Virus record (IMG/VR): IMGVR_UViG_3300023049_000005 | Coordinates: 1-64,000 of that record | Length of the DNA: 64,000 nucleotides | Reading direction: 5' to 3' (one strand) | Shown: piece after piece, positions 1 to 46,423 of the stretch | How the letters are laid out: every line of letters starts with the position of its first letter | Numbering within the stretch: position 1 is the stretch's first letter | Made by a program: the position numbers and the translations under genes | Notes under the pieces: generated by a model | The model's database searches: none | What the model was told of the DNA's origin: nothing | The model's input: only the letters and a program-made list of their open reading frames with translations

Positions 1-16
1 TCATAATAATAACGCC

Positions 17-136
17 ACATAACAACGTGTCATAAAACATTGCCTTTCGTGGTCTTTTTAAGTTTATACTAAATTTATAATTCTGTTCATTTTATTAAAT
101 TCTGTATTGGCAACGTTTCATACACCAACGTTACCT
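17..136 (+). mobile_element. attC-like recombination site 1 (integron cassette-type)
   Basis: ACATAAC (17-23) ... GTTACCT (130-136) flank an imperfect inverted repeat (GTGTCATAAAACATTGC 27-43 / GCAACGTTTCATACAC 110-125); 120 bp. Confidence 0.7.
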
Positions 137-175
137 GCAAGTGCTTAATTCAGTCCATTAAATAAAGTTGGTGCT

Positions 176-997
176 TCAATCTCTTTTTCTTTTCTTTTTT
201 CTTTTTTCTTCCCACGCTTTTTTTATTCTCGAATCGGCTATATTAAAATATTTATCTTCTAACTCAATCCCAATAAACCTTCTATTTGTATTCACACAAC
301 CAACGCCTGTCGTTCCGCTTCCCATTGTATTATCAAGAACTAACTCGCCTTCATTAGAGTATGTTTTTATTAAATACTCTATCAAGTCTAAAGGTTTTTG
401 TGTTGGGTGCAAACCTCTCTCTCTATTAAATTTCTGCACACTACTTGGGTATCTTAAATCAGGTCTGTTACTACTTACACCTTTATCGCCTATTAAGCCA
501 CCACTTCCGTAAACTTCGGCACTTGTATTATAATTCACTTTTGTTTTCACTCTCGCTTTACCGCTTTCAGCACGTTCTTCCATTATTGGGTTATAACACA
601 CCTTTCCGCCACCATTACTAAACACCACTATACTTTCGTGTTCTTTAAATGGTTGGTATTTAACAGTTCCAAAATTACTACCTGCATTTTTTTTCCAAAT
701 CCATTCGTGCTTAAAAAACTTAACGTGTTCATAGACCAAAGTAGATGTAAAAGGCTGTGAAGCAAACAAGACTATTGCACCATTCTTTTTTAATACCCTA
801 TAATATTCACTAAAAAGAAATGTTAAGTCTATTTGGCTATCCCATTTGCAGTCCGTAGTTCCGTATGGTAAATCGCAAAGAACCATATCTATACTTTTGT
901 CGTGTATTTGCGTGAAGTAATCTTCACAATAACCTTTGTGTAATTCTATATTATTCATAAGTTTTAATTTTATCAAATTAATTTTGCCAACGCTCAA
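176..997 (-). CDS. DNA N4/N6 methyltransferase (beta-class order), cassette-borne; ATG at 958 is a likely start
   Basis: Catalytic DLPYG motif near the N-terminus, HPTQKP, SAM-binding LDNTMGSGTT, FIGIELE. Confidence 0.9.
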   Translation of the reverse strand: MSVGKINLIKLKLMNNIELHKGYCEDYFTQIHDKSIDMVLCDLPYGTTDCKWDSQIDLTFLFSEYYRVLKKNGAIVLFASQPFTSTLVYEHVKFFKHEWIWKKNAGSNFGTVKYQPFKEHESIVVFSNGGGKVCYNPIMEERAESGKARVKTKVNYNTSAEVYGSGGLIGDKGVSSNRPDLRYPSSVQKFNRERGLHPTQKPLDLIEYLIKTYSNEGELVLDNTMGSGTTGVGCVNTNRRFIGIELEDKYFNIADSRIKKAWEEKRKKKRKRD

Positions 998-1058
998 AAA
1001 AGAAAAGAAAAAGGTTCAGTTCTGTTAATTAAGTTTTAGCGTTTAAAGTCGCACCAGT

Positions 1059-1121
1059 AGGTAACACGTAATATAATTAATTGGCAAAAAAGCCAACTAA
1101 CCATATTACCATCCGTTATCT
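1059..1121 (+). mobile_element. attC-like recombination site 2
   Basis: AGGTAAC (1059-1065) ... GTTATCT (1115-1121); inner stems GTAATAT/ATATTAC and TTGGC/GCCAA; 63 bp. Confidence 0.7.
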
Positions 1122-1127
1122 TTAATA

Positions 1128-1277
1128 CTACTTCGGTGCTTCTAAATGAGCCTTATTTATCAAGTAGGTTATGTAACCGCTAATGTTTTCAGTTCCTAAC
1201 GTCAAAACAGAAAGGTTTAACGCTCTTTGTTTTGTTTCTTCGGTCATTGTAACCGTCACTTTTTTAGTCTTTGTCAT
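1128..1277 (-). CDS. 49-aa ribbon-helix-helix-like protein (not in ORF track)
   Basis: Manual translation MTKTKKVTVTMTEETKQRALNLSVLTLGTENISGYITYLINKAHLEAPK; alternating beta strand then two helices; ATG overlaps the upstream TAA. Confidence 0.6.
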   Translation of the reverse strand: MTKTKKVTVTMTEETKQRALNLSVLTLGTENISGYITYLINKAHLEAPK

Positions 1278-1444
1278 TATTTTTTATTTTCCAACCATAT
1301 TAAAAAATTTAATTTCATCTCATCTAAGTTGAATTTCATAGAAAGTAGTTTACTTTCATAGTAAAAATAAAAAGTGTCAACACCCTTGCCACTTATAAGG
1401 TAATCTACAAAATCTAGCTTAGTCATTTTTTCAATATGTATCAT
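1277..1444 (-). CDS. hypothetical protein (cassette 2)
   Basis: ORF track 1277..1474; ATG at 1444 preferred because the TTG lies within the TATCTTTG promoter box (1472-1479). Confidence 0.55.
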   Translation of the reverse strand: MIHIEKMTKLDFVDYLISGKGVDTFYFYYESKLLSMKFNLDEMKLNFLIWLENKK

Positions 1445-1542
1445 TTTATTTGTTTTAAGTTTAACATACGTCAAAGATAGTAAATACTTTGCAAATACAA
1501 AAGGAATGCTAATAAAGTTTAGTTTTTATTTTACCGTACTAA

Positions 1543-1610
1543 AGGTAACACTACCTATAATGCAGTTTTTAAGAAAAATAAAAACCGACATCATAGCCAA
1601 AACGTTATAT
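1543..1610 (+). mobile_element. attC-like recombination site 3
   Basis: AGGTAAC (1543-1549) ... GTTATAT (1604-1610); inner stems CTATAATG/CATCATAG and GTTTTTA/TAAAAAC; 68 bp. Confidence 0.65.
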
Positions 1611-1684
1611 GTAAATCTTTAACAAAATTTACTATAATAAGGGCTAAAAAACATCCATAACGATGTTTAGTTTGGTGTTACTGA

Positions 1685-2278
1685 TTAGGCTGTGTTTCCC
1701 TGTCTGTCTAATATTTTTAAAAGTTCTTCCTTCCTAACGAATTTAGGAAAGTTTTCCGTTTCTTCTCTATTGACTAATTCCCACTCATTTTTATTAGAGG
1801 TCTGATATAGAAATGATTCACCTTCTTCCTCAATTTCTATTGTTCTATTAGTTAACTTATCATAGAAGTTAGAAAACTCACCATTTATTTGGTATAATTT
1901 AACACTATTCCAATCTTGTTGCGTAGAATTAAATGTTTGGATGAAAATATAATCAGGGTCTTGTAGGTCTGTTTTATTATTAGATCTTACTAACAAAAAT
2001 TTAAATGGGTTCAATAAGAAGGTTTCATAATCATCCGTTAATTCGACTACTCCTCTTTTAAGATTTTTTAATCTTAATATTTTTTGAAACTCACTATTAT
2101 TATCAAGATTTTCTAAATCTGTTATATCTATATCACCAATGAAGCTTTCTATATTAAGTAGCTCTGCTTGGACACTATCTAATATACTTTTCTCAACAAC
2201 CGATAACTTTTCTAATAGTTCATCCATTGTGCTAGGTTCTTCGATTTTAAATGATTCAAAGGTTCTAAGGTGCTTCAT
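1685..2278 (-). CDS. hypothetical protein with N-terminal capsid-targeting-like motif
   Basis: 197 aa, starts MKHLRTFESF; TAATATATA 4 nt before ATG. Confidence 0.75.
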   Translation of the reverse strand: MKHLRTFESFKIEEPSTMDELLEKLSVVEKSILDSVQAELLNIESFIGDIDITDLENLDNNSEFQKILRLKNLKRGVVELTDDYETFLLNPFKFLLVRSNNKTDLQDPDYIFIQTFNSTQQDWNSVKLYQINGEFSNFYDKLTNRTIEIEEEGESFLYQTSNKNEWELVNREETENFPKFVRKEELLKILDRQGNTA

Positions 2279-2291
2279 ATACTATATATTA

Positions 2292-2558
2292 TTACTTACT
2301 AATCATTTTTACTTCAATAGTAGAATCGTTATCCCATTCATAAGTATGATCATCAAAGGATATCATTTCTATATGAATATACTTAGTATTACTATCAGAT
2401 TCCAAACAAAAAGAACCATTGAAATCAGTATAAGTTGTGTCTATATTATTATAGACCTTAGCTCCAACGATATCATAGTTATTTTTATCGTGAACATTAC
2501 CCGTTATTATGACGGGGGTTAAAAATTGAATTATTACATTAAGGTATATTAAAATCAT
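2292..2558 (-). CDS. small CarboxypepD_reg-like domain protein
   Basis: ITGNVHD..IVGAKV..TYTDFNGSFCL pattern after a hydrophobic N-terminus. Confidence 0.55.
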   Translation of the reverse strand: MILIYLNVIIQFLTPVIITGNVHDKNNYDIVGAKVYNNIDTTYTDFNGSFCLESDSNTKYIHIEMISFDDHTYEWDNDSTIEVKMISK

Positions 2559-2589
2559 GTCTTATATATTATTTATGAAGTATATATAT

Positions 2590-2598
2590 TAATATATA
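2590..2598 (+). promoter_or_regulatory. putative late promoter box TAATATATA (representative of at least 18 copies)
   Basis: WATATATA exactly 4 nt upstream of 16 start codons in the window. Confidence 0.7.
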
Positions 2599-2602
2599 CT
2601 TC

Positions 2603-3943
2603 ATGAGATACTTAAAAAATTTAGAACTTTTCTTAGAGTCAACTAAGAGTAATACAAACCTGATTACTGATATATGTATTGCTATGTTATTGATCAACCC
2701 TGACTTCCTTAATAGTATATTAGACAAGGGAATGCATACAAGATATAAGTATAATAACTTAGTGTTTATCAATGATCTGAAACAACTTTTAATGAAGGAA
2801 AATAGATTAATTTTAGGTAAAAAGAACGAAGAAACAGGTAGATATGAAGAAGAAGATAATATCGGTAAGATTAATTCTTATTTCAATGATCACTCTAAGG
2901 AGTTCAATATCGAAAAAGATTTCAAAAAGTTAGAGAAAGCAAGAAATATCGCAAGAAACATACAAGATAAATTATTAGTAGAAGATAAACTAAGAGCAGA
3001 AATGGTTCAGAAAGTTTATTGGATCAGTCCTAATAAAGAAAGAGGAATAAAAGAAGATATCGTTATAGAACTAGTGGGCAGTAAACAATATCCTATCGTA
3101 GTTAATAGTAATATAAATAGTTCTAAAACTAAGAGCTTTAATACATTATTAGACGTAATGTTAGATAGTGATGCTGATATACTATTCTCTGATAAGTACA
3201 TCGATCTTTGGGATAAACTTACAGTGAATTGGTTCAATGCAGTTTATAAAAACGCTAAAACAGATTATAAGATAATGATCGATCAATTCATAGATGCTTC
3301 TAGGGCAGATAGTTTAACTTTTTTCGATTACCAAAACATCGAAATATTAGACGAAAAATATAAGATATTGGGTCAATTCTTTGCGCCTTTAAATAAGAAT
3401 TATAAAGAACTACCTAAATTAATGAATGATATTTGGAAAGATAGAAAGAAAAGTATCAACAATTATCAAGAAGTAGAAAAAGAATGGGATGAAACTAAGA
3501 AAGTTTTATTAAATAATAGAATCATTGAAGATATTATCATCGGTAGTATAGAAGAATTAATAGAAGGTGAAATAAAAAAAGATGAAAATAAATTTATCAT
3601 TGCTAATAATAAAATAAAGTCTAGGTTATTAAGACTTATATTAGATATTATCTCTGTTGAAGATATCGATGTATATTATGCAGGTTCTTCAAGTTTTTAT
3701 CACTTACCATCTAAGAAATGGTTCAGGGATAACTATAATAGACTTACAGTGAAGTATGATTATCATCAAGAATTGAGTGATGATAATGATTCTCAATTTG
3801 ATATTAGAATCGAATTAGACGAGAAACCATTAATGGATCTTGAAATAAGAACAGGATTTACTAGTAATGAAATGGGGAACAAACTTAGTAGTAAAATTAA
3901 GATCAACTACACTTCTAATTTCAATCAGAAAGTTAAACAATAA
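2603..3943 (+). CDS. hypothetical protein, probable internal virion protein
   Basis: 446 aa, starts MRYLKNLELFLES; late box upstream. Confidence 0.8.
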   Translation: MRYLKNLELFLESTKSNTNLITDICIAMLLINPDFLNSILDKGMHTRYKYNNLVFINDLKQLLMKENRLILGKKNEETGRYEEEDNIGKINSYFNDHSKEFNIEKDFKKLEKARNIARNIQDKLLVEDKLRAEMVQKVYWISPNKERGIKEDIVIELVGSKQYPIVVNSNINSSKTKSFNTLLDVMLDSDADILFSDKYIDLWDKLTVNWFNAVYKNAKTDYKIMIDQFIDASRADSLTFFDYQNIEILDEKYKILGQFFAPLNKNYKELPKLMNDIWKDRKKSINNYQEVEKEWDETKKVLLNNRIIEDIIIGSIEELIEGEIKKDENKFIIANNKIKSRLLRLILDIISVEDIDVYYAGSSSFYHLPSKKWFRDNYNRLTVKYDYHQELSDDNDSQFDIRIELDEKPLMDLEIRTGFTSNEMGNKLSSKIKINYTSNFNQKVKQ

Positions 3944-3945
3944 AA

Positions 3946-4794
3946 TTATAACTTTTGCTTAAAAGCATGAAGTACATTTAATAAGAGAGAAGCCACCGTC
4001 ATCGGTCCTACTCCATTAGGCACGGGGGTCATAGCAGATACTTTATGTTTCAAATTGTCGTAATCGACATCACCACAAAGTTTACCTTCACTGTTTCTAT
4101 TAATACCAACATCAACAATAACTGACCCTTCCTTAACCATATCTTCGGTGATCATATTTTGTTTACCCACAGCACAAATAATAATATCAGCACTAATAGT
4201 CTTCTCTTTAAGATCTGATGTATTAACATGACAAGAAGTTACTGTTGCTTTGTCTTCATTACCTAACATAATAGATATAGGTAAACCAACGTGTTGTCCT
4301 CTACCAACTACTGTTACGTTCTTTCCTTCCCAATTAATATCATAATGTTCTAGTAATTTAAGAACACCTAATGCTGTCGCAGGTTTAATGCCAGGTAAGT
4401 CTAAACACATTCTTCCCATATTATCACTATGGAAACCATCTACATCCTTTTTTGGGCTGATCGTACTAATAATATTTTTATAACTAATATGATCGGGTAG
4501 TGGTGTTTGTACTATTATACCATCTGTGTATTCGTCTTCGTTAAAGAATTTTATTGCTTTTAATATTTCTTCTTCATTAGAAGATTCCGAATATTTAGAA
4601 AGTGTTGTCTTAACACCCACCTCATTTGAGGATCTGATTTTATTTCGGATATAGATATCAGAAGCTTTATCTTCTCCTACTTGTATGATAGCAAGTTTGG
4701 GTTGCTTCCCAAATTGATCTTTACAATGATCAATCTCTTTTTTTAAATCATCTTTAATAGACTGTGCTGCGTCCTTCCCGTTTAAAACTACCAT
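3946..4794 (-). CDS. folD: bifunctional methylenetetrahydrofolate dehydrogenase/cyclohydrolase
   Basis: GIIVQTPLP, KDVDGFH, VVGRGQHVGLP, IVDVGINR, TPVPNGVGPMT. Confidence 0.97.
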   Translation of the reverse strand: MVVLNGKDAAQSIKDDLKKEIDHCKDQFGKQPKLAIIQVGEDKASDIYIRNKIRSSNEVGVKTTLSKYSESSNEEEILKAIKFFNEDEYTDGIIVQTPLPDHISYKNIISTISPKKDVDGFHSDNMGRMCLDLPGIKPATALGVLKLLEHYDINWEGKNVTVVGRGQHVGLPISIMLGNEDKATVTSCHVNTSDLKEKTISADIIICAVGKQNMITEDMVKEGSVIVDVGINRNSEGKLCGDVDYDNLKHKVSAMTPVPNGVGPMTVASLLLNVLHAFKQKL

Positions 4795-4853
4795 AAAATT
4801 AATGTACTTCTTTTGGTCATTATATCAAAATACGACCATTAGTTTACTAAATA

Positions 4854-5195
4854 TTAATCTAAATCTACTTGATCAATTCGGTAGTCTCTCATAAGTATAA
4901 CGAGATCATTTTTAAGGAGATCGTAAACCGTTCCTTTCTCTCTGTAACCATAGTACGCATCTAATCCATTGATTGACTTCTTGTTATTCTGTACTACCTT
5001 TTTTATCACAGATAAAGGTATGTTTATTTTTTCCCTTTTTAAATATTTCAATAAATAGGAATCCTTTCTGTTTCTTTTAGTAGCGATAACAATAAACTTT
5101 ACTAAATCATCAATAGGATCATCATCTCCCTCAGATACATCACCAATTATTAGTAAGAATTGGCGTTTATCATAATAATCTTTATTACTTTTCAT
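4854..5195 (-). CDS. hypothetical protein with C-terminal RDxxID tag
   Basis: Ends RDYRIDQVDLD; overlaps upstream gene. Confidence 0.7.
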   Translation of the reverse strand: MKSNKDYYDKRQFLLIIGDVSEGDDDPIDDLVKFIVIATKRNRKDSYLLKYLKREKINIPLSVIKKVVQNNKKSINGLDAYYGYREKGTVYDLLKNDLVILMRDYRIDQVDLD

Positions 5196-5523
5196 CTATG
5201 ATATTATTTATATTCCAATCCCTTCTCAGGATTTTAATTTCTTTTTCTAACCCGTCTCTTTTTTTAGAAATTTCTCCAATGCTTTCAAAATCAAAAATAT
5301 TAATATCTTTAAATATTTTTTTTAATTTCGAAAAAGAAACATTTAATTTTATTCTTTTTATTTGTCCCATTAACTCAGTGGGTTTGTACCCAAAACCATA
5401 GATATTAGATAAAAAAGGTTGAGTATTGTCTCTCACATCTATCCCTTCTTGTCTTTTTCTTATTGTGTACGCAATTCTATTATTTCGCTTCTTTACTTGT
5501 TTACTATATCCTTTTCTATTCAT
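5185..5523 (-). CDS. hypothetical protein with C-terminal RDxxIN tag
   Basis: Ends RDWNINNIIDEK. Confidence 0.7.
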   Translation of the reverse strand: MNRKGYSKQVKKRNNRIAYTIRKRQEGIDVRDNTQPFLSNIYGFGYKPTELMGQIKRIKLNVSFSKLKKIFKDINIFDFESIGEISKKRDGLEKEIKILRRDWNINNIIDEK

Positions 5524-5932
5524 TTGAATATATTTTTTGCCTATTTACTATATAATAATAATCCCACTTATTTTCCTCTGTTGTTATGTTATATATATTT
5601 CTTTCTTCTACTACATAAAAGGTAGTCGTATCTGTGATATTATCAAAATCTATTAGTTTATCAAAGATTAATAAATCATCACTGTTTTTAATAGACACGT
5701 ATATTTCATACTTTCCTTTTGTAATACTTAGAACCTCTGCTTCTAAATCTGTTTTAGTAACCGTTGAAACCGAACCAATTAATCCCCAACAAACTAATCC
5801 GATTGCTACTAAGGCTATATAACCCACCAATGTATGATCCTCTGATCCTCTATAATGACCATATAGGGCTATCAAAAGAGATGAAGTGGTTAATATACTA
5901 AAAACTAATATCATTATTTCTCTCGCTTCCAT
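5516..5932 (-). CDS. hypothetical membrane protein
   Basis: Two N-terminal hydrophobic segments; coupled to pncB stop. Confidence 0.7.
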   Translation of the reverse strand: MEAREIMILVFSILTTSSLLIALYGHYRGSEDHTLVGYIALVAIGLVCWGLIGSVSTVTKTDLEAEVLSITKGKYEIYVSIKNSDDLLIFDKLIDFDNITDTTTFYVVEERNIYNITTEENKWDYYYIVNRQKIYSNE

Positions 5933-7140
5933 TATACTTCTAATTTTTCTCTATTAGTAACTGAATAGTTGAACACTTCTTGGTATCTATCAATGTCTTC
6001 TTTTCTGCCCGTGTGTTTATTTAAGTTATCAGAAAGTTTAACTAAGGATCTATCACCGTCTTCTCTAAATACTTTAACTGCTTTCATAACGATAGATAAG
6101 GTTTCATATCCCAAGTTGTTAGTAAGTTTAGTACCCCACCCAAATGATATCTTTATTCTACTAATAAACCTTTCGTATAATCCAATAATTTTATTCACAT
6201 CTAAACCATCAGAGAAAACAATAAGTTTTTCTTTAGGATCGATACCTAGATCTTCATAATACTTGATTACCTTTTCTCCAAATTCAAAAGGATCACCGCT
6301 ATCATGTCGGACTCCTTTCCACGAACTTGCTTTATCTTTAAAGTCTTCAAAAAAGAAATCTGTACCAAACGTATCAGTAAGACCAATACTCAATGGTTCG
6401 TCATACATTTCAAACCATTGGTTCATAATAATACTATGAGATTCTTTAAGACTAATATCATTATTATCATAGTAACCTGCAGCAATCATATAGATCTCAT
6501 GTGCATTTGTTCCAATAGGTGTGATTCCGTATTTCTTAGCAAAATAAACATTAGATGTCCCTGAGAAAGAAGGATCGGTAGAAATGTGTTCTATAACCTT
6601 ATCTTGCCAATCATGTGAGAATCTTCTTCTTGTGCCGAAATCAGTTATTACTTGTGGAATACTGTATTCATCCAATACATAAAGATGATCTCTTAAGTTA
6701 CATAAACCTTCGAGTTCGTCTTCAAGTCTATTTCTTTCAGGATACTTATATCTGTAATATAATTCGTTTACTGTAGAAAGTACAATAGTTTCCCATAACG
6801 TAGCAGCAAACCAATAGGTGTTTTCATCAGTATAAATATCTAAGTCCTCTGTTACATGGATCTCAGGTAGTTGATACCCAATTAGAGATGTTGTATAATC
6901 CATATTGAATATACCTAAGTTATTCAAATAGTCTATTTCATCTATTTGGAATCTAAGTTCTCTAATTTTAGCGAACTCTTCATCAAGTATTTCTTTGGTT
7001 AAATACTGCTTGAGGTCAACATTGGTTCTGTTTTTGAATTGGAATTGCGCTCTCAGTCTTGGGTAATATGTCCAAGCAAACTGCATCATTGTGAGTTTGT
7101 AGAGATCTAAATCTAATAGGCTTCTTACGGTTGTTTTCAT
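5932..7140 (-). CDS. pncB: nicotinate phosphoribosyltransferase
   Basis: DLDLYKLTM, DFGTRRRFS, GTSNV, GTNAHE, RHDSGDP, VFSDGLD, KLSDN. Confidence 0.93.
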   Translation of the reverse strand: MKTTVRSLLDLDLYKLTMMQFAWTYYPRLRAQFQFKNRTNVDLKQYLTKEILDEEFAKIRELRFQIDEIDYLNNLGIFNMDYTTSLIGYQLPEIHVTEDLDIYTDENTYWFAATLWETIVLSTVNELYYRYKYPERNRLEDELEGLCNLRDHLYVLDEYSIPQVITDFGTRRRFSHDWQDKVIEHISTDPSFSGTSNVYFAKKYGITPIGTNAHEIYMIAAGYYDNNDISLKESHSIIMNQWFEMYDEPLSIGLTDTFGTDFFFEDFKDKASSWKGVRHDSGDPFEFGEKVIKYYEDLGIDPKEKLIVFSDGLDVNKIIGLYERFISRIKISFGWGTKLTNNLGYETLSIVMKAVKVFREDGDRSLVKLSDNLNKHTGRKEDIDRYQEVFNYSVTNREKLEV

Positions 7141-7400
7141 AATATTTCGTATCCTAGTTTTGGTGCGTTTTCTTTTAATTTCTTGTAATACATATTTATA
7201 TATTCACCACTATCCCCATTACAAGGATGTGACATACCTGTAATCTTCTCCGCTAGAAAATTAATAAGATCACCTCTCTCCAATGTATCAAAACATTCAA
7301 TAGGATTCTCATCAAGAAATTCTTGTATTTGTTCATCAGTTAAGTTAAAACCGAATAATTTCAACATTTCTTCTTTAATAGATGGAATAAGGTGTATCAT
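7137..7400 (-). CDS. hypothetical protein
   Basis: 87 aa; TATTTTTG box at 7415-7422. Confidence 0.65.
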   Translation of the reverse strand: MIHLIPSIKEEMLKLFGFNLTDEQIQEFLDENPIECFDTLERGDLINFLAEKITGMSHPCNGDSGEYINMYYKKLKENAPKLGYEIL

Positions 7401-7437
7401 GTTTTTATTTTACACAAAAATAAAGATAAATAATCTA

Positions 7438-8166
7438 TTAACCAAATTTAAGTTCATTCATTCGATCTACACACATAGAAGTATAAATTTTATAATCCAT
7501 TCCATATGATCCAATAGCCCACATATCATTAACTTCTATTAACATAGTCTCACCTTTATCATTAACACCTACATCTAATGTATATGCGATTGGAGAACTA
7601 TCATAATCTCTAATCATCTTTTCAACAAGAGAAGCATCAATATACTTTCTGAAATCACCCGCATAATATTGGATTCCTTTAAGTTCCTTTTTATGAACAA
7701 AACACCTATATTCTGAAACTATATTAATAGGATCACTGATATAAAGTTCCATATCATTTGTAAGATCACAGTAATCTCTCATAAACTTCAATGATTCTTC
7801 TTTCTCGATTAATTCACCCGTAAAAAGTTTAACATCATCAGCAGGTTTTATAAAAAATGGATAATCTTTAGTGTTATTATTTAGATTACTTTTTGTAATA
7901 TCTCTCTTTAAATACTTTTTTAGTGTATCAGGATATCCTAAGTACTTAGGTACTTCTATATCTATCTTATTGAAGAAATCGGTTGTAGCCTGTACAGAAG
8001 CTATAATAATATCTGATTCTTTATATACAGGAACAGAAATCATATCCGTAAACGGAACTACTTTAAACCCCCTGTTATATAGCTCGTTATGGCATATATA
8101 CACGAAATCATCAAACCATTCGTCGTTGACAGGATCTTTCTCTAAAAAGGCTCTTTTTTCTTTCAT
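7438..8166 (-). CDS. ATP-grasp domain protein (DUF4343/R2K-like)
   Basis: FIKP..KLFTG, EYRCFV, AYTLDVG, LIEVND..AIGSYG. Confidence 0.8.
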   Translation of the reverse strand: MKEKRAFLEKDPVNDEWFDDFVYICHNELYNRGFKVVPFTDMISVPVYKESDIIIASVQATTDFFNKIDIEVPKYLGYPDTLKKYLKRDITKSNLNNNTKDYPFFIKPADDVKLFTGELIEKEESLKFMRDYCDLTNDMELYISDPINIVSEYRCFVHKKELKGIQYYAGDFRKYIDASLVEKMIRDYDSSPIAYTLDVGVNDKGETMLIEVNDMWAIGSYGMDYKIYTSMCVDRMNELKFG

Positions 8167-8194
8167 TCTACAAATATAATAAAATATATAGTAT

Positions 8195-8884
8195 ATGAAC
8201 TATTTAAAACTATTTGAAAATTGGTATGATAATAGAACAATTAAAGGGAGGAAAGATTATTCTCAAATAAATTTAGATTGGTCTAAGTTCCTAAAAGATG
8301 TTGATTACACATTCGATATTATTAAACAAGTCAATCCTAGATTGGAAACTCAATGGATAGAGCCTTTTGGTAATTACCTGACATTAATAGAAGGCGGTGA
8401 ATTAGATGATTATCATGAGATAGAAACCATCGAAGAATACGAAAACAGTTATATAAAACAACCTATTAAAGATTATATAAAGTTATTTAAGAAAACCAAG
8501 GATCGAGGATATTTGGAGGTAACTAGGATATTGACTGTTGATGATTTAAGTGAAATTGATTTTAGTAAAATAGGTAAGTATTGGTCATTCTGCGATAACC
8601 CAAGTCAAAAATTTGATAATATCTACAAAAAACAATATATCAAATTAATAGCTAAAGCTAGATTAGATAGTATAGATTGGTTAAATAGTTTAGACAATTA
8701 TGTATATTATGGGGATGATGAATGTGAGATAACACTAAGAGAAGGCGCATCTATTTTCATTGAAAAGATGATAAACGATAAAAGAACTCCTAGTGATTAT
8801 AAGACTAAGAAGGATAATAAAACTTTTTATAATTTTACAGGAAATAAGGAAACTATCGATTTAAATAAGAAGGCTAAAATTTAA
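8195..8884 (+). CDS. hypothetical protein with capsid-targeting-like motif
   Basis: Starts MNYLKLFENW; AAATATATA 4 nt before ATG. Confidence 0.75.
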   Translation: MNYLKLFENWYDNRTIKGRKDYSQINLDWSKFLKDVDYTFDIIKQVNPRLETQWIEPFGNYLTLIEGGELDDYHEIETIEEYENSYIKQPIKDYIKLFKKTKDRGYLEVTRILTVDDLSEIDFSKIGKYWSFCDNPSQKFDNIYKKQYIKLIAKARLDSIDWLNSLDNYVYYGDDECEITLREGASIFIEKMINDKRTPSDYKTKKDNKTFYNFTGNKETIDLNKKAKI

Positions 8885-9581
8885 GATCTAATATAACCGA
8901 ATTATCTTGTTCTAATATATCTAAATAATATTCTATTATAAAAGTTTTACTATAGTAATCCATATCTGCTCTAACATAAATCCCCTTTATATCAAAATAA
9001 ACAGCAGGTGTTAATAATACTTGGTTAGGGTCTAATAAATTATTTTCATTAATAGTCAAATTAAAATCAGGTCTTTTCATATAATGATAAATATTCATAT
9101 CTACTTCAAGATAACTATATTTAATATAATTCAATTTCCCGTGTAATTCATTAATATTATTAATAGGTTCGACTTTAATATTCTGTAACATTTGTTGGAA
9201 TTGGGTATATAATTGTCTTTCAAAATCTCTTACAAGATATGGGATGTAGTCAATATTCATATCCATATTTAACTTTACGGTAAACTGATGACTATCTAAT
9301 CTATGTGTATGGATAATAGGAGCTATTACACCTATATAATCCTTATCTCGTGTAGCTATATTAAATACTTCCGCTTTCTTATTAGTATATTCACTCTCGT
9401 TTATATCATCTAATAACATATCTATTTCTATATCCCTTAATTTAGTAGTTCTTTCGGCTTGAGACTGTGTTTCTTCTTTTACTATCTTATGATAATGGAT
9501 AACATCTTTATTTCTAGGATAATCTACGAAATAATATTTCTCTCTTAAATATTTTTCTACTTCTTCTAATTCGTTATTCAT
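8874..9581 (-). CDS. hypothetical protein
   Basis: 235 aa; internal RDIEIDMLL motif. Confidence 0.7.
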   Translation of the reverse strand: MNNELEEVEKYLREKYYFVDYPRNKDVIHYHKIVKEETQSQAERTTKLRDIEIDMLLDDINESEYTNKKAEVFNIATRDKDYIGVIAPIIHTHRLDSHQFTVKLNMDMNIDYIPYLVRDFERQLYTQFQQMLQNIKVEPINNINELHGKLNYIKYSYLEVDMNIYHYMKRPDFNLTINENNLLDPNQVLLTPAVYFDIKGIYVRADMDYYSKTFIIEYYLDILEQDNSVILDLKF

Positions 9582-10267
9582 TTAAATAGTAACTTTTTTA
9601 TCTCATCATTTTTAAGATACTTCTGTATCTGATGTACACCTAATGGGTCTTCGTAGAACATAGATTCTACTGCAAATCTCTTTTTAGTTTCTAATGGTAT
9701 GTCATCTTTGATAGCATTAGAGAAATACATATCTTCGAATTCGTAATCCTGTTCAATGTTCTCTATTATATCTACCATTTTACTTCTCTTCCTAAGAGAG
9801 AAACCGCCATTACCACCATTCTTAAAATCTTTTAGATCTTTATATCGTTTATCACGATAATCACCGTATGCCCAATACCAAGGTGCGCCTATATAATCAT
9901 AACTTAAAAATTCTTCTATACCACTTCTTAATACAAAGCTATCGTGTTGGAAAACTAAAATGTTTTCATATTCTATATCGTTCCAAAAGTGGATATCTTT
10001 AAATATTTTATTATAGTCTATGCTCTCAGGTATAATACTTTTTTCCACATCGTTTATACAATTCTTAGACACATGAGAACAGAAGTACCTTATAGGTAAA
10101 TTTAAATGATGTTTCACTGTGTCTGTAACCCAATCTAAATAATCGAGATTTCTCGTTTCTACGATGATAGCTAAACAGTTTAAATCAGAAGAATTAGGAT
10201 TATAATCCATTATAGGTTTATAGTCTGTTTCTTCTTTATATTTTTTTATCAAAGAATGATTAAACAT
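9578..10267 (-). CDS. DUF5672-like (glycosyltransferase-like) protein
   Basis: ILVFQHDS, YDYIGAPW, GGNGGFSLR, EDMYFS. Confidence 0.75.
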   Translation of the reverse strand: MFNHSLIKKYKEETDYKPIMDYNPNSSDLNCLAIIVETRNLDYLDWVTDTVKHHLNLPIRYFCSHVSKNCINDVEKSIIPESIDYNKIFKDIHFWNDIEYENILVFQHDSFVLRSGIEEFLSYDYIGAPWYWAYGDYRDKRYKDLKDFKNGGNGGFSLRKRSKMVDIIENIEQDYEFEDMYFSNAIKDDIPLETKKRFAVESMFYEDPLGVHQIQKYLKNDEIKKLLFK

Positions 10268-11010
10268 TATGGTATCATTAATTCTCTTTCAGTGTATTTG
10301 TGTATATTAGAAGATTTCTTAGTATTAGAAATAGCATATTTATATAAACTCTGTGGTTCTGCTTCCATTACCTTTTCTAAATGTTTACTACTTCTAGCTG
10401 AATCTTCATCTGAAATCTTTGGTTTATCAGTATCAAATACATATGTTTTAATTCCATTTACCTTACCTGATGAAATCAAGTTAGTGTTTTTCTTATCTTG
10501 TAATACATAAAGGTCTTCACTGAATACACTTTCGTCCCATGTTCCTACCTTATATAAATCATCGTATTTATAATAAACAATACCATGTGATGCCTTTTCT
10601 TCGCCTTTTAAATCCGCAGGTAGTTCTTTTTTATCAGTTTGTTGTTGATTTAAATAAACAACTTCGTCTTGTAGATATAAACAACCGTGATCTGTATTCT
10701 TTTGAATAACTGCCATAATTGTTTTGATGGTCGGCACAAGAGACATCTCACCAAAAAATAATTTATCAGTACTTGTGTTTCTCGTTCCTATATTATATAA
10801 CCAACCTAAGTTCCACTTTTTACTTTCTACGAAAACGTGTTTACATTTCATATCCTGATTCTTTAAGAAAGAGTGTTTTCCTGTTTCCACAACGATAATT
10901 TCTATCATTGGATTCTGTAATAATATATTGATATTATATTTAAGAGCATTTAAGTTCCTTCTACTATGTGAATAAGGAATTATATAACTGCATATGTAAC
11001 TAGTTTTCAT
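10267..11010 (-). CDS. divergent GT2/GT7-like glycosyltransferase homolog
   Basis: SYIIPY, EIIVVE, WNLGWLYNIG, VGTWDE; DxD motif not evident. Confidence 0.55.
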   Translation of the reverse strand: MKTSYICSYIIPYSHSRRNLNALKYNINILLQNPMIEIIVVETGKHSFLKNQDMKCKHVFVESKKWNLGWLYNIGTRNTSTDKLFFGEMSLVPTIKTIMAVIQKNTDHGCLYLQDEVVYLNQQQTDKKELPADLKGEEKASHGIVYYKYDDLYKVGTWDESVFSEDLYVLQDKKNTNLISSGKVNGIKTYVFDTDKPKISDEDSARSSKHLEKVMEAEPQSLYKYAISNTKKSSNIHKYTERELMIP

Positions 11011-11682: not shown

Positions 11683-12540
11683 ATGAAACCAATTTATAAA
11701 TGGACAGGTGGAAAAAGAAAAGAGATTGATATAATCAGAGAATACACACCACAATATATTAAAGAAGAAAAAGAATATACTTTCATAGAACCATTTTTTG
11801 GTGGCGGTGCTGTGTATTGGAATTTAGAAAACAATGATAATATCATAAATGATGTTGATACCGAAGTAATAAATTTTCTTAATACTATAAAATCTAATCC
11901 CAACGAAGTATCTAAAGTATTAGATCAGTTAAGTAAAGATATAGCAATCATAACAACAAGAGAAAAAAACGAAGAATTATCTATATCAGAAGCAAAAACC
12001 GAAAGAGGTAAATATTTCTATGAGTGGAGAAATAAAGATAGAGACGGTGGAATGACTAACTTATCTGAAATAGAACGTGCTATTCGATTTTATATAGTGA
12101 ATCAGTTATCATTTAATGGTATGAGAAGATTTAATAATAAGGGAGAATTCAATGTACCTTATGGTAATTATAAAACATTTAATAGACAATACACGGAAGA
12201 TCATATTTCTTTATTACATAATACTACAATAAACTGTGGTGATTATAGAGATATTATTAAAAAGACTGATAAAGATACTTTTGTGTTTATTGATCCTCCT
12301 TATACAAGAGAATTTAATGAATATAGCCACGGCAATTCTTTTGGCAATAAAGAACAAATGGAGCTTTGTGATTTATTCAAGAGTTCAGATTGTGATATAA
12401 TGATCGTAATCAATAAAGATGATTTCACGACTGAATTATATGACGGATATATTAAGGATGTATATGAATTAAAATACTCCACTAATATCAAGAATAGATT
12501 CTCGAATACAGTGGAGCATTTAATGATCACTAATTACTAA
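11683..12540 (+). CDS. Dam-like (D12 class) DNA adenine methyltransferase
   Basis: KWTGGK, FIEPFFGGGAV, FNVPYG, FIDPPY. Confidence 0.92.
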   Translation: MKPIYKWTGGKRKEIDIIREYTPQYIKEEKEYTFIEPFFGGGAVYWNLENNDNIINDVDTEVINFLNTIKSNPNEVSKVLDQLSKDIAIITTREKNEELSISEAKTERGKYFYEWRNKDRDGGMTNLSEIERAIRFYIVNQLSFNGMRRFNNKGEFNVPYGNYKTFNRQYTEDHISLLHNTTINCGDYRDIIKKTDKDTFVFIDPPYTREFNEYSHGNSFGNKEQMELCDLFKSSDCDIMIVINKDDFTTELYDGYIKDVYELKYSTNIKNRFSNTVEHLMITNY

Positions 12541-12549: not shown

Positions 12550-13533
12550 CTATTTCACTAGTTTGAATTTTTTGCCTTCCTTAGCAGCAACAGTATTATA
12601 AAATTCTAGTAGAGCTTTTACAATATGTTTTACTTTTTTACCATCAAGGAAATCTTTGCTTTCCAATTCGTTAATCACACTCTTTTTAGTAAGCATTTTT
12701 TCGAAAATTCTACGCTCATAATTTTCATATGAATAGAGGTTAACAACGGCTCTTTGGAAATATCTATTTCTAACTGTTTTTCCTGAGAGTTTTTTAGGTA
12801 AATCCATAAGCATCCAATCTAGAAAATCAATTACTTCCTTTTCAGATCTAACAAATCTTAGATCCCCGTTGTTAAAAGGTTTGTGTATAGTAGCTGCACT
12901 AAACGCCTTATGACCCGTGATGAGCATTCTGAGTTCATTGTGCTGAATACTCTTGTACTGTATAAGCTTTTTGTTATTATACCTGTCGTATATCTTTTTA
13001 TACTTAGTATAAGTATTACCTTTCTTAGTACCACTTTTCTCTTGTTGAACAAAGTGTTTTAAGTAGCCGTTCACATCCCAAGGTTTACCTTGTTGTATCG
13101 CAGCTAGATCAGCTTCTGTTACATTTTTACTAATGAAGAAATAAACAGGAAGTTCTAAGGCTGCTCTTGCTGCAAGTCTATGTTGTCCGTCCATCACACG
13201 CAAATCAGAATCCATCATAAAGGGAATATCTAAGTCTTTCCCATTATCGGAAATTTCTTTCTTCCACCATTCGATTTGTTTTCGATTCTTGTCACGGTTT
13301 GATTCGACTATACTAAACGAATCATAACTCTTTGTCTTGAAAATGATATTCTCAATTCCTACATCCATTCCCTTAGCTTTCATTTTAGCTAAAGTCTCTA
13401 GATATCCTGATTCTTCCATCTTAGTCAAGAACTGCGCAATAAGTTCATTCTTATACATTTCTACTGCAAGTGATTGGTTTCTACTCGTAGCCTTTTTTGC
13501 TACTTTTTTCTTTGGGGTTGCTATACTAGCCAT
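12550..13533 (-). CDS. ParB/Srx-like domain protein (paralog A)
   Basis: SNR..., IPFM...VMDGQHRLAA. Confidence 0.65.
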   Translation of the reverse strand: MASIATPKKKVAKKATSRNQSLAVEMYKNELIAQFLTKMEESGYLETLAKMKAKGMDVGIENIIFKTKSYDSFSIVESNRDKNRKQIEWWKKEISDNGKDLDIPFMMDSDLRVMDGQHRLAARAALELPVYFFISKNVTEADLAAIQQGKPWDVNGYLKHFVQQEKSGTKKGNTYTKYKKIYDRYNNKKLIQYKSIQHNELRMLITGHKAFSAATIHKPFNNGDLRFVRSEKEVIDFLDWMLMDLPKKLSGKTVRNRYFQRAVVNLYSYENYERRIFEKMLTKKSVINELESKDFLDGKKVKHIVKALLEFYNTVAAKEGKKFKLVK

Positions 13534-13554
13534 AATATACTTATTTAGGTTAAA

Positions 13555-45709: not shown

Positions 45710-46423
45710 ATGAATAATGAAAAAAAATCAGGAAGTATCGTAGACCTTCCTTCTAATTCTATGACTCCTTATATATTAGAGGAAAGACAAATGAATGTTA
45801 CGCAGATGGATGTGTTCAGTCGTTTGTTACAAGACAGAATCATCTTTGTATCGGGTGTAGTTAATGAATATATGTGTAATGTAATCCAAGCACAGCTTCT
45901 TTTCTTAGAGTCTGCGGATGCATCGAGAGACATTACATTGTATATCAACAGCCCAGGCGGGAGTGTAATCCACGGTCTTGGTATCGTAGACGTAATGAAC
46001 TACATTAAGCCTGATGTAGCAACAATCAATGTTGGTATGTGTGCATCTATGGGATCTGTTCTATTATCAGCAGGAGCAGAAGGAAAAAGATCAACATTAG
46101 TTTCGGCTAAAGTGATGATCCACCAAGCAAGTAGTGGAACACAAGGTAATGTACAAGATCAGGCTATTTCTTTAAGAGAAACACACATGTATAATTACAT
46201 CTTACTTAAAACTTTAGCCAAGAACACAGGACAGACATTAGAGAACATGATTAAATTTTCTGAAAGGGATCTTTGGTTGGATTCTGATGAGTCCAAAGAA
46301 TTTGGTATAGTGGACGAAGTTATTATTCCTGATGGGTCAGAATCTATCTCTGAGCTTAAACAAGGTTTCAATGAGTATATGGAATCAGTTAACAGTAAGC
46401 ACGTATATAAAAATAATAAGTAA
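45710..46423 (+). CDS. clpP: ATP-dependent Clp protease proteolytic subunit
   Basis: DVFSRLLQDRIIF, YINSPGG, GMCASMG (catalytic Ser), MIHQ, ERD. Confidence 0.96.
   Translation: MNNEKKSGSIVDLPSNSMTPYILEERQMNVTQMDVFSRLLQDRIIFVSGVVNEYMCNVIQAQLLFLESADASRDITLYINSPGGSVIHGLGIVDVMNYIKPDVATINVGMCASMGSVLLSAGAEGKRSTLVSAKVMIHQASSGTQGNVQDQAISLRETHMYNYILLKTLAKNTGQTLENMIKFSERDLWLDSDESKEFGIVDEVIIPDGSESISELKQGFNEYMESVNSKHVYKNNK

Follow-up and report, generated by a model that had tools for sequence, protein, structure and literature searches.

A likely integron-like array of small gene cassettes beside an Xer-like recombinase gene in a giant phage genome

The first ~1.7 kb of the giant phage genome IMGVR_UViG_3300023049_000005, of which positions 1 to 64,000 (64,000 nucleotides, hereafter the window) were analysed, contain small gene units separated by imperfect palindromes bounded by TAAC...GTTA. 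From the letters of the sequence alone this region had been read as an integron-type cassette array carried by a phage, with exchange at G/TT by an IntI-type tyrosine recombinase of the phage or of its host. The locus therefore raises the questions whether such an array is real and mobile, and which enzyme serves it. The array reading held with respect to the sites, the staggered matches between them, a covariance model and cassette mobility, and all the TAAC and GTTA motifs it had listed were confirmed in position. We conclude that the region is the distal end of a genuine integron-like array of small, mobile cassettes, and that this array is probably the phage's own platform, served by an Xer-like recombinase and not by a classical integron integrase; the catalytic role of that enzyme is inferred from linkage only.

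The sequence-only reading had also predicted that the array continues to the left of the window, on the basis of a minus-strand ATG, and this was found to be correct. A near-identical contig (L001), showing one mismatch in 10,958 nt compared with the window, extends the array by ~0.86 kb and carries three further cassettes followed by a recombinase gene, so that both the tyrosine recombinase and the additional sites searched for on this side were found (Table 1). The left end of the array in L001 is a conserved attI-like site located 37 nt before the gene of a 268-aa tyrosine recombinase. A 93-aa cassette ORF may start at the ATG at 4-2; the contig of the window stops 4 nt into this ORF, and an alternative ATG for it is located at L001 10956 (window 3). 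Window positions 14-1681 represent the distal part, approximately two thirds, of a six-unit array. The possibility of a chimeric host contig was excluded, since the phage genes on both flanks of the array are joined in the independent assembly L001.

Table 1. Features of the cassette array and its flanks (window positions, unless L001 is named)
Feature	Position	Strand	Remarks
Recombinase gene, 268 aa	L001 11856-12662, left of window	minus (window orientation)	
attI-like site	L001 11816-11840 (window about -857 to -881)		conserved family junction
Unit order from attI			c1 (59-aa ORF), c2 (62 aa), c3 (93 aa), c4 (MTase), c5 (55 aa + 49 aa), short empty remnant
Cassette c3, right-hand end	1-130	minus	whole unit L001 10829-11210, window 130 back to -251
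c3 ORF, 93 aa	called L001 10919-11200		start inside window, with own upstream attC-like site
Site 1, attC-like, c3	14-139	minus	TAAC 20-23, GTTA 130-133; long class, 114 nt TAAC to GTTA
Cassette c4, 985 nt	131-1115	minus	DNA methyltransferase (MTase) gene, leader, own upstream attC-like site
N6/N4-type DNA methyltransferase	176-958	minus	260 aa from ATG 958; 273 aa if TTG 997 is used
Site 2, attC-like, c4	1056-1124	minus	TAAC 1062-1065, GTTA 1115-1118; short class
Cassette c5, 489 nt	1116-1604	minus	two overlapping genes, upstream attC-like site
c5 second ORF, 49 aa	1128-1277	minus	RHH label of the sequence-only reading unverified
c5 first ORF, 55 aa	1277-1444	minus	overlaps 49-aa ORF
Site 3, attC-like, c5	1540-1613	minus	TAAC 1546-1549, GTTA 1604-1607
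ORF-less unit, 73 nt, with degenerate site 4	1605-1681	none	status uncertain
Site 4, degenerate	TAAC 1658-1661, 15 nt, GTTA 1677-1680		doubtful
197-aa phage gene	1685-2278	minus	distal flank of array; not a cassette

Three of the four hairpin sites proposed within the window were confirmed. On the minus strand site 2 forms an 18-bp stem with G.T pairs and a 6-nt loop; its folding z-score is -3.8 and that of site 3 is -4.4, both sites fold best on the minus strand, and for neither did any of 200 shuffles fold as well. Site 1 forms a 13-bp stem with one bulge (-10.1 kcal/mol on the minus strand versus -6.2 on the plus strand), and its energy is not significant compared with shuffles (z -0.95). 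We accept this site because of its stem structure and homology, not its folding energy: a site in two other loci (L007/L008) matches it with 78% identity across 135 nt, and there precedes a different ORF with the same cassette ends. When the window was scanned on both strands, with filters off, using a covariance model trained only on sites of other loci (R1), the two best matches were site 2 (27.5 bits, E = 8e-4) and site 3 (26.4 bits, E = 1.5e-3), each over the span and on the strand given in Table 1, and the next match had E = 0.1. The possible fourth site (1651-1681) was not above chance, showing no fold (dG 0) and no match to the model.

It had been noticed that the right arm of each site pairs best with the left arm of the following one, as expected for circular cassettes integrated at one point. 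Scored as matches in the 10 nt beyond GTTA/TAAC, two of the three proposed pairings held: 130/1059 (7/10, 130 versus 1065) and 1115/1536 (8/10, 1115 versus 1549), against a background in the rest of the window of P(>=7) = 0.0097 and P(>=8) = 0.0021. The third, 1604/1651, failed, with 3/10 ungapped (1604 versus 1661), which is the chance level. Immediately to the left of the window, three further junctions gave scores of 9, 8 and 8 of 10, and at each of them an exact 10-mer GTTAxxxxxx is matched by its complement. The outer arm of site 1, GCCACATAAC (14-23), is complementary to GTTATGTGGC at window -252 without a mismatch (10/10). Five of six consecutive junctions therefore display staggered complementarity of 7-9/10 (background P about 0.01 or less each). 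Exact complementary 10-mers form a chain of three at the array, while the other four pairs in 74 kb are AT-rich, of low complexity and away from it; simulation gave a mean of 3.2 such pairs per 74 kb. The limits of cassette c4 illustrate the exchange point, with G|TTA at 130/131 and 1115/1116 and with complementary ends GTTACCT / AGGTAAC (7/10 in extension). The proposed G/TT crossover, as G|TTA on the plus strand of the window, and the antisense position of the cargo relative to the attC orientation both held. Because the stagger is unchanged by reverse complementation, the orientation of the sites cannot be derived from it and rests on the direction shown by the attI junction and by the cassette breakpoints.

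One could argue that these are ordinary terminators or regulatory hairpins, that the stagger arose by chance and that nothing is mobile. The sites are indeed intergenic and fold best on the transcribed strand, and the lone 7-mer match 130/1059 is weak when taken alone. This explanation is all but excluded by the chains of exact 10-mers, by the occurrence of identical cassettes in unrelated contexts and by an attI junction that differs between otherwise identical genomes (both described below); moreover, a terminator scan scored 0 sites, so the hairpins are not classical intrinsic terminators. An Rfam scan of window positions 1-6000 returned nothing at E <= 1.

The cargo was identified in part. 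The DNA methyltransferase of cassette c4, proposed earlier, was confirmed (PF01555, E = 6.4e-31; phrog_67, E = 6e-71). The exact protein is present on two contigs only, both representing this phage, and no second copy of the cassette was found in another context: other arrays gave only homologues with 22-57% identity, which are located inside 8 of them. The proposed RHH cargo remains unproven: the 49-aa protein of cassette c5, which has 39 homologues of 60-98% identity, showed no family or structure match in Pfam, PHROGs, NCBIfam, a PDB profile search or Foldseek, none of which supports the RHH assignment, and its AF2 model (pLDDT 70.6, low confidence) consists of an extended N-terminus followed by two helices. 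The ORF-less unit with site 4 is likely the distal terminus of the array, its own status being uncertain. The stop codon of the flanking 197-aa gene (1685-1687) is located 5 nt past site 4; this gene is not followed by a site and is present only in this phage.

Homologues of the recombinase are numerous (more than 3,000 at E <= 1e-20), and 80 viral loci encoding recombinases with 50-81% identity were fetched for comparison. Nearly all of the ~80 such contigs that include the upstream flank carry cassette arrays upstream of the recombinase gene; staggered pairs amount to 5.9 per 6 kb upstream versus 0.58 downstream (33 loci), and no conserved partner gene was found downstream. Model R1 gave 157 matches at E <= 0.01 in 1.18 Mb, all on the recombinase-sense strand. 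The short site motif is present in at least 120 stretches of the viral collection. The module is common to many unrelated phage contigs: when 28 flanking genes of this phage were compared with the other 90 loci, none was shared except for three weak matches (21-32% identity), and the module was therefore not simply inherited with one phage lineage. Among cultured phages, no megablast match to window positions 1-6000 was found, and those in the collection have no homologue of the recombinase above 38% identity. Polaribacter phage Freya, whose integrase (35% identical) is encoded behind a region that varies in length, was not counted as a member, no stagger signature being seen. No description of the module was found in the searchable literature.

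From these loci 213 distinct sites were collected, in which TAAC/GTTA is invariant and which fall into length classes of about 60, 90-105 and 130-140 nt. Beyond the R box TAAC/GTTA they have an unpaired, asymmetric spacer and then a stem with a variable loop, and 9 of their 20 base pairs show compensatory changes; the sites thus share a conserved, covarying hairpin geometry, which agrees with the canonical attC fold in part only. In 178 of 207 sites the sense strand folds more stably than its complement (p = 5e-29; median z-score -3.3). In 89% of the sites a G follows AAC on the better-folding strand, as in the bottom strand of attC (PMC2727003). The conserved unpaired bases form a fixed 3-nt bulge adjoining the cleaved arm which, together with a conserved G.T pair, is found on one strand only; no conserved extrahelical bases were seen in the stem.

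In 296 of 346 units the ORF is located on the opposite strand, and each attC-like site is positioned upstream of its own ORF. Of 83 long-class sites, 62 contain the start codon, and in the examples read an A-rich stretch comes before it. The invariant ATG of the short-class loop TCGTTTTAATG was considered as a start codon and rejected, because reading from it left just 5 of 20 ORFs open. Since the mRNA has the sense of the better-folding strand, selection on RNA structure could explain part of the strand bias.

Mobility was evident from cassettes shared between arrays. Two of the left-hand cassettes of this phage are present, at 99-100% identity, in other metagenome contigs whose flanks are unrelated, the homology breaking exactly at TAAC: cassette c1 does so over about 337 nt in 7 other contigs and c2 behaves similarly in 3. 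Another cassette is 100% identical over 315 nt between two loci with unrelated flanks (L004 and L068), and one is internal in an array (L028) and attI-adjacent in another (L036). Relatives of c5 in arrays L113-L118 share the site and leader (84-93% identical) as well as the 49-aa gene and cassette end (93-94% identical), with the first ORF replaced and homology stopping exactly at the TAAC of both ends. The JGI contig L095 equals L001 for 6,847 nt from the attI TAAC onward, while the 9 nt to the left differ; two otherwise identical phage copies thus carry different cassettes next to attI. The source samples are JGI 3300023049 and ENA ERZ27315366, and in the short-read assembly the attI-proximal part is interrupted on either side, from which several array variants are predicted. 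The earlier reading had proposed a comparison with related phages as a check, and these genomes do differ by whole cassettes exactly at GTT/AAC junctions. In all informative comparisons the breakpoints are within TAAC(G), with a stagger of 7-10 nt, and the exchange point cannot be placed more finely than these shared 4-5 nt. We consider the array, the covarying sites, their orientation relative to the recombinase, the attI-like junction, the shared-cassette breakpoints and the turnover at attI to be established.

A second rival explanation is homologous or illegitimate shuffling at promoter-plus-stem-loop elements, the recombinase being incidental (a dimer resolvase or a lysogeny integrase). 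Such PeSL 'mobile regulatory cassettes' have reportedly been found in hyperplastic regions of T4-type phages (Arbiol et al. 2010), where small phage ORFs, each after a promoter and stem-loop as here, are shuffled among related phages. In favour of this explanation are the start codons and A-rich stretches of the long sites, the conservation of site families between cassettes, and the replacement of one ORF of c5 with both ends kept. Against it, the breakpoints coincide at the same 4-5 nt (TAAC) even where the stems of the sites are unrelated, a stagger of 6-10 nt is what a circular intermediate cut at a single point leaves behind, and the arrays always abut an attI-like site by the recombinase gene and are strictly co-oriented; for PeSL, the proposed exchange is homologous or illegitimate, and no dedicated recombinase, fixed 4-nt point, stagger or attI is known. 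We therefore regard PeSL-like shuffling as very improbable.

The question of the enzyme is answered in part by the recombinase itself, which contains domains PF13495 and PF00589 and in which the catalytic residues R134, K159, H218, R221, H244 and Y253 are invariant (family alignment, 20 sequences). Its structural model (pLDDT 83) matches IntI4, XerA, XerH and Cre, with VchIntIA and archaeal XerA as the best matches, and the criteria of the tyrosine recombinase superfamily (R-K-H-R-H-Y and a two-domain fold, the fold being predicted by the model) are met. The claim of an IntI-type enzyme held only partly: this is a phage-own tyrosine recombinase, but the IntI-specific insertion (I2 helix region) is absent, residues 178-214 (37 aa) facing residues 179-263 (85 aa) of the VchIntIA chain; the Foldseek alignment spans 317 columns for the 268-aa query. 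The IntI models score below their cut-offs (TIGR02249, 148.4 bits in two stretches versus 265; PRK15417, 93 versus 435). Membership of the Xer dimer resolvases (XerC/XerD/XerA) is not met either, because these models also score below cut-off (XerA_Arch 185.6/220, XerD 147.8/329.6, XerC 140.1/335) and because the arrays to which the gene is linked comprise up to 20 or more sites instead of a single dif site. A junction 'xxxxxxTAAC TAT(A)TTATATATA' precedes the recombinase start in 64 of 73 loci, at about 40-100 nt in the loci printed; this attI-like site has no hairpin, and the bases left of the junction belong to the last cassette. The sequence GTTATATATG adjoining the recombinase gene was considered as an R' core and rejected, the family alignment showing it to be part of the conserved attI-like site. 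Between the phage's own and a host integrase, which the sequence-only reading had left undecided, the phage's own is favoured, its catalytic role being inferred.

Several features are shared with integrons, such as the Vibrio cholerae superintegron. In both systems a recombinase gene adjoins an attI or attI-like site at the end of a one-directional array of small, mostly single-ORF cassettes, which are located between imperfect palindromes with ...TAAC / GTTA... cores. Exchange occurs at G|TT and the stagger links the beginning of each cassette with the outer arm of the site belonging to it, while the sites are alike in structure over sequence (R box, unpaired spacer, L stem, variable loop). 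New cassettes are found beside attI and identical cassettes are common to unrelated arrays. The membership criteria for attI (cassettes inserted by the recombinase gene) and for attC (imperfect inverted repeats with RYYYAAC ... GTTRRRY cores, 57-141 bp) are both met.

There are also differences. Besides the missing insertion and the sub-cut-off scores of the recombinase, the phage ORFs are antisense to the attC top strand, with attC upstream and, in the long class, often holding the start codon. The phage array is transcribed toward the recombinase gene with no Pc-type arrangement evident, whereas integron arrays are transcribed away from it, from Pc. Phage sites have a 3-nt bulge on the R' side, in contrast to the extrahelical G and T on the R''-L'' arm of attC, and the host replicons are large phages, with some prophages or Bacteroidota contigs, instead of bacterial chromosomes or plasmids. 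These differences bear on a third rival, a canonical bacterial integron or fragment captured by a phage and served by a host IntI. In its support, the core motifs fit RYYYAAC/GTTRRRY, and integron fragments and small attC clusters have been reported in 21 phages (PMC9892861). Qi et al. 2023 described attC-like sites and methyltransferase cassettes in phages and proposed phage cassette exchange (PMC9892861), but their cases are canonical IntI integrons in prophages, or 2-3 predicted attC without an integrase. Capture is nevertheless very unlikely here, given that the recombinase beside the array does not belong to the IntI type, the ORFs run opposite to those of canonical cassettes, phage contigs with none of the flanking genes of this phage also carry the module, and array and phage have equal GC contents. 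One of the published cases, the phage attC cluster MW202573, was found to belong to an unrelated 34.6-kb P22-like phage with no annotated integrase or recombinase gene.

The most serious alternative is a double-stranded, Xer/dif-style exchange at short core sites, with hairpins serving only expression or termination. The pdif modules of Acinetobacter plasmids are gene modules bounded by Xer sites; like the phage cassettes they are small and occur in varied contexts, but their 28-bp duplex XerC/XerD sites alternate in orientation, are not known to have hairpins or a linked recombinase gene, and are found on plasmids. Duplex exchange is favoured by the Xer-like enzyme without an I2 region, by the absence of a hairpin at the attI-like site, and by a few minimal 24-nt sites 'xxxxxxTAAC ACTT GTTAxxxxxx' (L007 5593, L052 6449), which resemble a classical core with a 6-bp overlap. 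On the other hand, more than 95% of sites have 40-130 nt between TAAC and GTTA, a distance bridged only by folding or cruciform extrusion; in addition, the stems covary, the 3-nt bulge and the G.T pair are one-stranded, and 157/157 sites have one polarity. We judge duplex exchange to be unlikely.

Our preferred reading is thus a phage-borne integron-like platform with its own recombinase, which we consider likely. The mobile unit would be [TTA..., minus-strand ORF, ... attC-like hairpin ...G], exchanged within the invariant G|TTA of the window's plus strand, which reads TAA|C on the strand with the recombinase sense. The Xer-like tyrosine recombinase of 268 aa encoded next to the array is predicted to catalyse these exchanges, which is inferred from strict linkage only; no experiment is available and no circular cassette was observed. 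Its substrate would be the recombinase-sense strand folded as single-stranded DNA, with the R box TAAC/GTTA and conserved G.T pair, the 3-nt bulge and the variable stem and loop as the putative attC-like parts. Cassettes may pass through circular intermediates, entering at attI and leaving by site-by-site recombination, and the products would be resolved by replication, as in integrons and in CTX-phage integration. The single-stranded substrate, the circles and the replicative resolution are inferred, with only indirect support from the one-strand folding bias and the single site polarity. In the integron literature the I2 region is the key adaptation for single-stranded substrates (PMC7790495), and a recombinase without it would need another solution for hairpin recognition. 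CTX-phi and other IMEX elements are reported to integrate via XerC/XerD at a folded single-stranded attP (Val et al. 2005). This precedent, which includes an Xer-type recombinase without I2, a one-strand hairpin, a single strand exchange and resolution by replication, makes the proposed chemistry plausible; there, however, one whole phage genome enters the host dif via host enzymes, and neither arrays, nor an attI beside an element-encoded recombinase, nor a cassette pool are known.

As for its biological role, the platform likely allows co-infecting phages to gather and trade small accessory genes, a function that is inferred. Some of the cargo, namely several classes of DNA methyltransferase and an ADP-ribosyltransferase, possibly represents counter-defence; this rests on family names only and the function is untested. 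A bolder interpretation, towards which we lean by a narrow margin, is that of a second integron lineage, mainly of large phages probably infecting Bacteroidota, in which a compact Xer-like recombinase without I2 acts on folded single-stranded hairpins, and in which self-expressing inverted cassettes, rich in methyltransferases and other candidate counter-defence genes, make up a common pool from which otherwise unrelated phages exchange.

Integrons are held to be bacterial and, since 2022, also archaeal, with the gain of the I2 helix by an Xer-like ancestor as the key step (PMC7790495, PMC4792948). Here the integron logic (attI, hairpin sites, G|TT exchange and a cassette pool) occurs with a recombinase that never had, or has lost, I2, so that the origin of single-strand recombination becomes directly amenable to testing. 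Such arrays would presumably not be called complete integrons by tools that require an IntI-specific domain. The 268-aa recombinase, with its loose sequence requirements, is of interest as a genetic tool. For phage biology, the module supplies a mechanism, concrete and site-specific, for the hyperplastic regions with small accessory ORFs that have long been noted, and it would let unrelated phages share counter-defence genes.

The TAAC...GTTA sites at the left end of the window belong to an array of gene cassettes, which continues beyond the window towards a phage-borne tyrosine recombinase. The sequence-only reading, which had described three such sites and a possible degenerate fourth, with the right arm of each pairing best with the left arm of the next, was correct in the position of all its motifs. 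Sites 2 and 3 are strong hairpins (minus-strand z of -3.8 and -4.4), site 1 is a long imperfect hairpin for which energy alone is not significant, and site 4 gave no fold in the folding-energy test. The stagger, scored as matches within 10 nt beyond GTTA/TAAC, was 7/10, 8/10 and 3/10 at the three in-window junction pairs; against the background of every other GTTA/TAAC pair in the window (P(>=7) = 0.0097; P(>=8) = 0.0021), two of the three claimed matches are above chance and the third is not. The array model offers no explanation for site 4 and the 73-nt unit beside it, and their possible status as a remnant is not established. The expectation that the array continues to the left, with more sites and a tyrosine recombinase to be sought there, held: the near-identical contig L001 carries three more small ORFs (93, 62 and 59 aa), with a TAAC...GTTA site before each, and beyond them, on the same strand, the gene of a 268-aa tyrosine recombinase. 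All three L001 junctions show exact 10-mers against their own complements, and a stagger of at least 7/10 is found in five of the six consecutive junctions of window and L001. A covariance model (R1), built from 14 short-class sites of which none came from the studied phage, was run on both strands of the whole window; its best match was site 2 (E = 8e-4), followed by site 3 (E = 1.5e-3), with the next match only at E = 0.1. Weak model matches on both strands (E = 2-5) lie in an AT-rich stretch (15% GC) at the start of a 446-aa gene, which is likely a palindromic regulatory region and was not counted as a site.

The same reading would have been refuted by a chimeric host contig. In reverse orientation, the window forms the beginning of a 270,756-bp contig of the viral collection (JGI 3300023049, Ga0136601_1000001); it has a GC content of about 29% throughout and encodes phage-type functions (fused topoisomerase II, helicase, DNA polymerase, clamp loader, head maturation protease, PhoH, FolD and NAPRTase); "very large phage" is a fair description of the source. 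L001 (ENA ERZ27315366 k141_4805, 206,690 bp) is an independent assembly in the reverse orientation (window position = 10959 - L001 position), which overlaps window 1-10,958 with 1 mismatch and extends leftward. Since it both spans the region and runs on to the left, the region is not a chimera. Outside the array, the window also carries a second DNA methyltransferase, a pair of neighbouring paralogous ParB-like genes, and a 2,688-aa ORF without PHROG match about 1 kb upstream of the head maturation protease gene.

Coordinates of the array, its sites and other features in the window and in fetched loci
Feature	Sequence	Coordinates (strand)	Detail
Site 1	window	17-136
Site 2	window	1059-1121
Site 3	window	1543-1610
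Site 4	window	1651-1681
Cassette c1	L001	11485-11818	59 aa
Cassette c2	L001	11211-11484	62 aa
Cassette c3	L001		93 aa
Cassette c4	window	131-1115	methyltransferase
Cassette c5	window	1116-1604	55 + 49 aa
Exchanged part of c5	window	1277-1444	compared with L113-L118
Exact 10-mer junctions	window numbering	-252/14; -526/-372; -860/-652	in L001
AAACTT(T)A motif	window	52-60 (-)
AT-rich stretch	window	2570-2609
446-aa gene	window	2603-3943 (+)
FolD	window	3946-4794
NAPRTase	window	5932-7140
Second DNA methyltransferase	window	11683-12540 (+)	phrog_56, E = 1.6e-58
ParB-like pair	window	12550-14442 (-)	phrog_12305
Fused topoisomerase II	window	17209-20445
Tellurite-resistance-like	window	26261-27319
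PhoH-like	window	32417-33193
2,688-aa ORF	window	36587-44653 (+)
Head maturation protease	window	45710-46423 (+)
Assembly breaks	window; L095	1; 1-13
29-nt empty cassettes	L004; L029; L027; L031	9936-9964; 9923-9951; 276-304; 348-376
29-nt empty cassettes	L047; L053; L068	4485-4513 and 7971-7999; 9650-9678; 2107-2135
24-nt minimal sites	L007; L052	5593-5616; 6449-6472
Downstream clusters	L010; L011; L058	18268-20612; 19616-19683; 9271-11229

The module is widespread. Homologs of the recombinase number more than 3,000 at E <= 1e-20, and those at 50-81% identity are found on 80 viral contigs. Where upstream flank is available, nearly all loci have the region before the recombinase gene filled by chains of GTTAxxxxx(x) and their complements, which stop at a conserved junction ahead of its start; some arrays have at least 20 units. 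Staggered pairs reach 5.9 per 6 kb upstream versus 0.58 downstream; arrays were found by exact 9-mers, so that counts are lower bounds. A second, non-adjacent cluster of sites or staggered pairs was seen 8-10 kb downstream of the recombinase in three loci. By length, the 213 distinct sites group into classes of about 60, 90-105 and 130-140 nt. On 1.18 Mb of other loci, R1 gave 157 matches, 157/157 on the recombinase-sense strand, and the short-site pattern alone occurs in at least 120 stretches of the viral collection. For the short class, RNAalifold gave an R box TAAC/GTTA with a conserved G.T pair, a 3-nt bulge on the 5' arm, a 12-bp stem with compensatory changes in 9 of 20 pairs, and the loop TCGTTTTAATG. 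Because of the G.T pairs, 178 of 207 sites fold better as the recombinase-sense strand (p = 5e-29).

Several variants of these sites recur. Empty cassettes of 29 nt, GTTAxxxxx-TCGTTTTAATG-xxxxxTAAC, have as their body the 11-nt sequence that also forms the invariant short-class loop, and minimal 24-nt sites without hairpin (xxxxxxTAAC ACTT GTTAxxxxxx) resemble a classical core site on duplex DNA, with an overlap region of 6 bp. Of 149 long sites (95-160 nt, many loci), 55 have in their loop the motif AAACTT(T)A, which is present in the window; it stands most frequently 12 nt before an ATG and could be a cassette-borne promoter or translation signal.

The stagger is symmetric under reverse complement and therefore does not fix the orientation of the array. 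The DNA directly before the recombinase gene, xxxxxxTAAC TAT(A)TTATATATA, is conserved in 64 of 73 loci, and the variable bases on its left side are complementary to the beginning of the last cassette; this junction is an attI-like site, whose fixed half remains with the recombinase gene. Cassettes common to unrelated arrays (100% identity over 315 nt between loci L004 and L068, 97.9% over 419 nt between L061 and L073) run from the TAAC 5' of a site to the following TAAC, and the one common to L028 and L036 occupies an internal place in one array but adjoins attI in the other. From this junction and these cassette ends it follows that the mobile unit on the recombinase-sense strand consists of C, site, GTTAxxxxxx, ORF and xxxxxxTAA. 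Exchange occurs within TAA/C, which is G/TTA on the window + strand, with a resolution no finer than the common TAAC(G). On the same evidence, the claim that the cargo genes are antisense to the attC orientation held. The order integrase, attI, cassettes is that of the classical integron map, whereas the ORFs are inverted in the phage module.

Cassette change at GTT in related phages, proposed as a check of the sequence-only reading, was confirmed for c1, c2, c5 and the position next to attI and not for the methyltransferase cassette c4, for which no second context was found among the loci compared. Seven other metagenome contigs carry cassette c1 at 99-100% identity over about 337 nt, with unrelated flanks and breaks at TAAC on both sides; c2 shows the same pattern in three contigs. 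Homologs of c5 occur in six arrays (L113-L118), one of which (L114) terminates in a 267-aa recombinase, and the homology ends at TAAC motifs equivalent to window 1604-1607 and 1115-1118. These homologs keep the upstream site, leader, 49-aa gene and cassette end, while the first ORF is exchanged (55, 122, 130 or 42 aa) and always overlaps the 49-aa gene by ATGA, a case of mosaicism within one cassette. In the sample from which the window comes, the recombinase gene is on a separate contig (L095), identical to L001 for the 6,847 nt that begin with the attI TAAC; the preceding 9 nt differ, and the two therefore represent otherwise identical phages with different attI cassettes. The short-read assembly (JGI 3300023049) is broken at both ends of the attI-proximal part of the array, 15 nt after the G/TTA of site 1 and 9 nt before the attI TAAC, as might be expected of a population in which several cassette variants occur together.

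Across 346 units the median cassette body is 258 nt long, and 86% of units have their ORF in recombinase sense. Of 83 long-class cases, 62 place the start codon within the loop of the site, and in these the ORF reads on through the 3' arm. A stop codon formed by the TAA of TAAC itself is frequent (39 of 185 cases). Cargo in the window comprises an N6/N4 DNA methyltransferase and a two-gene unit of no assigned function; ten ORFs sampled from other arrays, which are among the largest and do not represent the small-ORF majority, included D12 and MT-A70 methyltransferases, an ART-PolyVal ADP-ribosyltransferase, an Rv2179c-like exoribonuclease, an RNA ligase and DUF5131.

The recombinase matches PF13495 and PF00589, and its six catalytic residues are invariant in the family alignment. 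It scores under every curated NCBIfam cut-off (XerA 185.6 vs 220; integron integrase 148.4 vs 265; XerD 147.8 vs 329.6). Opposite 85 residues of VchIntIA it has 37, so that about 48 residues are missing in that part of the catalytic domain in which IntI has its extra domain; the view that the missing stretch includes the I2 helix itself is taken from the literature and not from a residue-level check. The predicted structure (pLDDT 83) fits VchIntIA about as well as archaeal XerA. Relatives are found in genomes of Mesonia, Sunxiuqinia, Prolixibacteraceae and Flavobacteriaceae, the closest cultured ones being flavobacterial phages, and from these a host among the Bacteroidota is inferred. A bacterial chromosome contig of 697 kb (Mesonia aquimarina NZ_RCNV01000001; L086 and L081) has a recombinase of 51% identity, with the attI-like junction, adjoining a phage portal gene, and the M. 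aquimarina locus is likely a prophage carrying the module. Ten near-identical cultured phages, Polaribacter phage Freya_1 to Freya_10 (MT732463-MT732472), vary by 0-4 kb of small ORFs directly upstream of a 35%-identical integrase that starts, depending on the phage, anywhere between positions 44 and 4141; the TAAC/GTTA stagger was not seen in Freya_10.

Integron parts are known from 21 phages (PMC9892861). No description of this recombinase family or of these arrays was found in the literature searched; most subscription journals lay outside it, and an earlier description is possible. The array with its sites, their polarity, the attI-like junction, exchange within TAAC and cassette turnover are established by sequence comparison, without experiment. 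In the mechanism that we infer, the linked recombinase would catalyse the exchange on a folded single strand, with circular cassette intermediates and products resolved by replication. For a folded single strand as the substrate of a Xer-type enzyme, CTX-phage integration provides the precedent. Compared with integrons, the hairpin geometry of the phage sites differs and two defining features are not met, namely the IntI-specific domain and the orientation and expression of the cassettes; the phage system nevertheless works in the manner of an integron.
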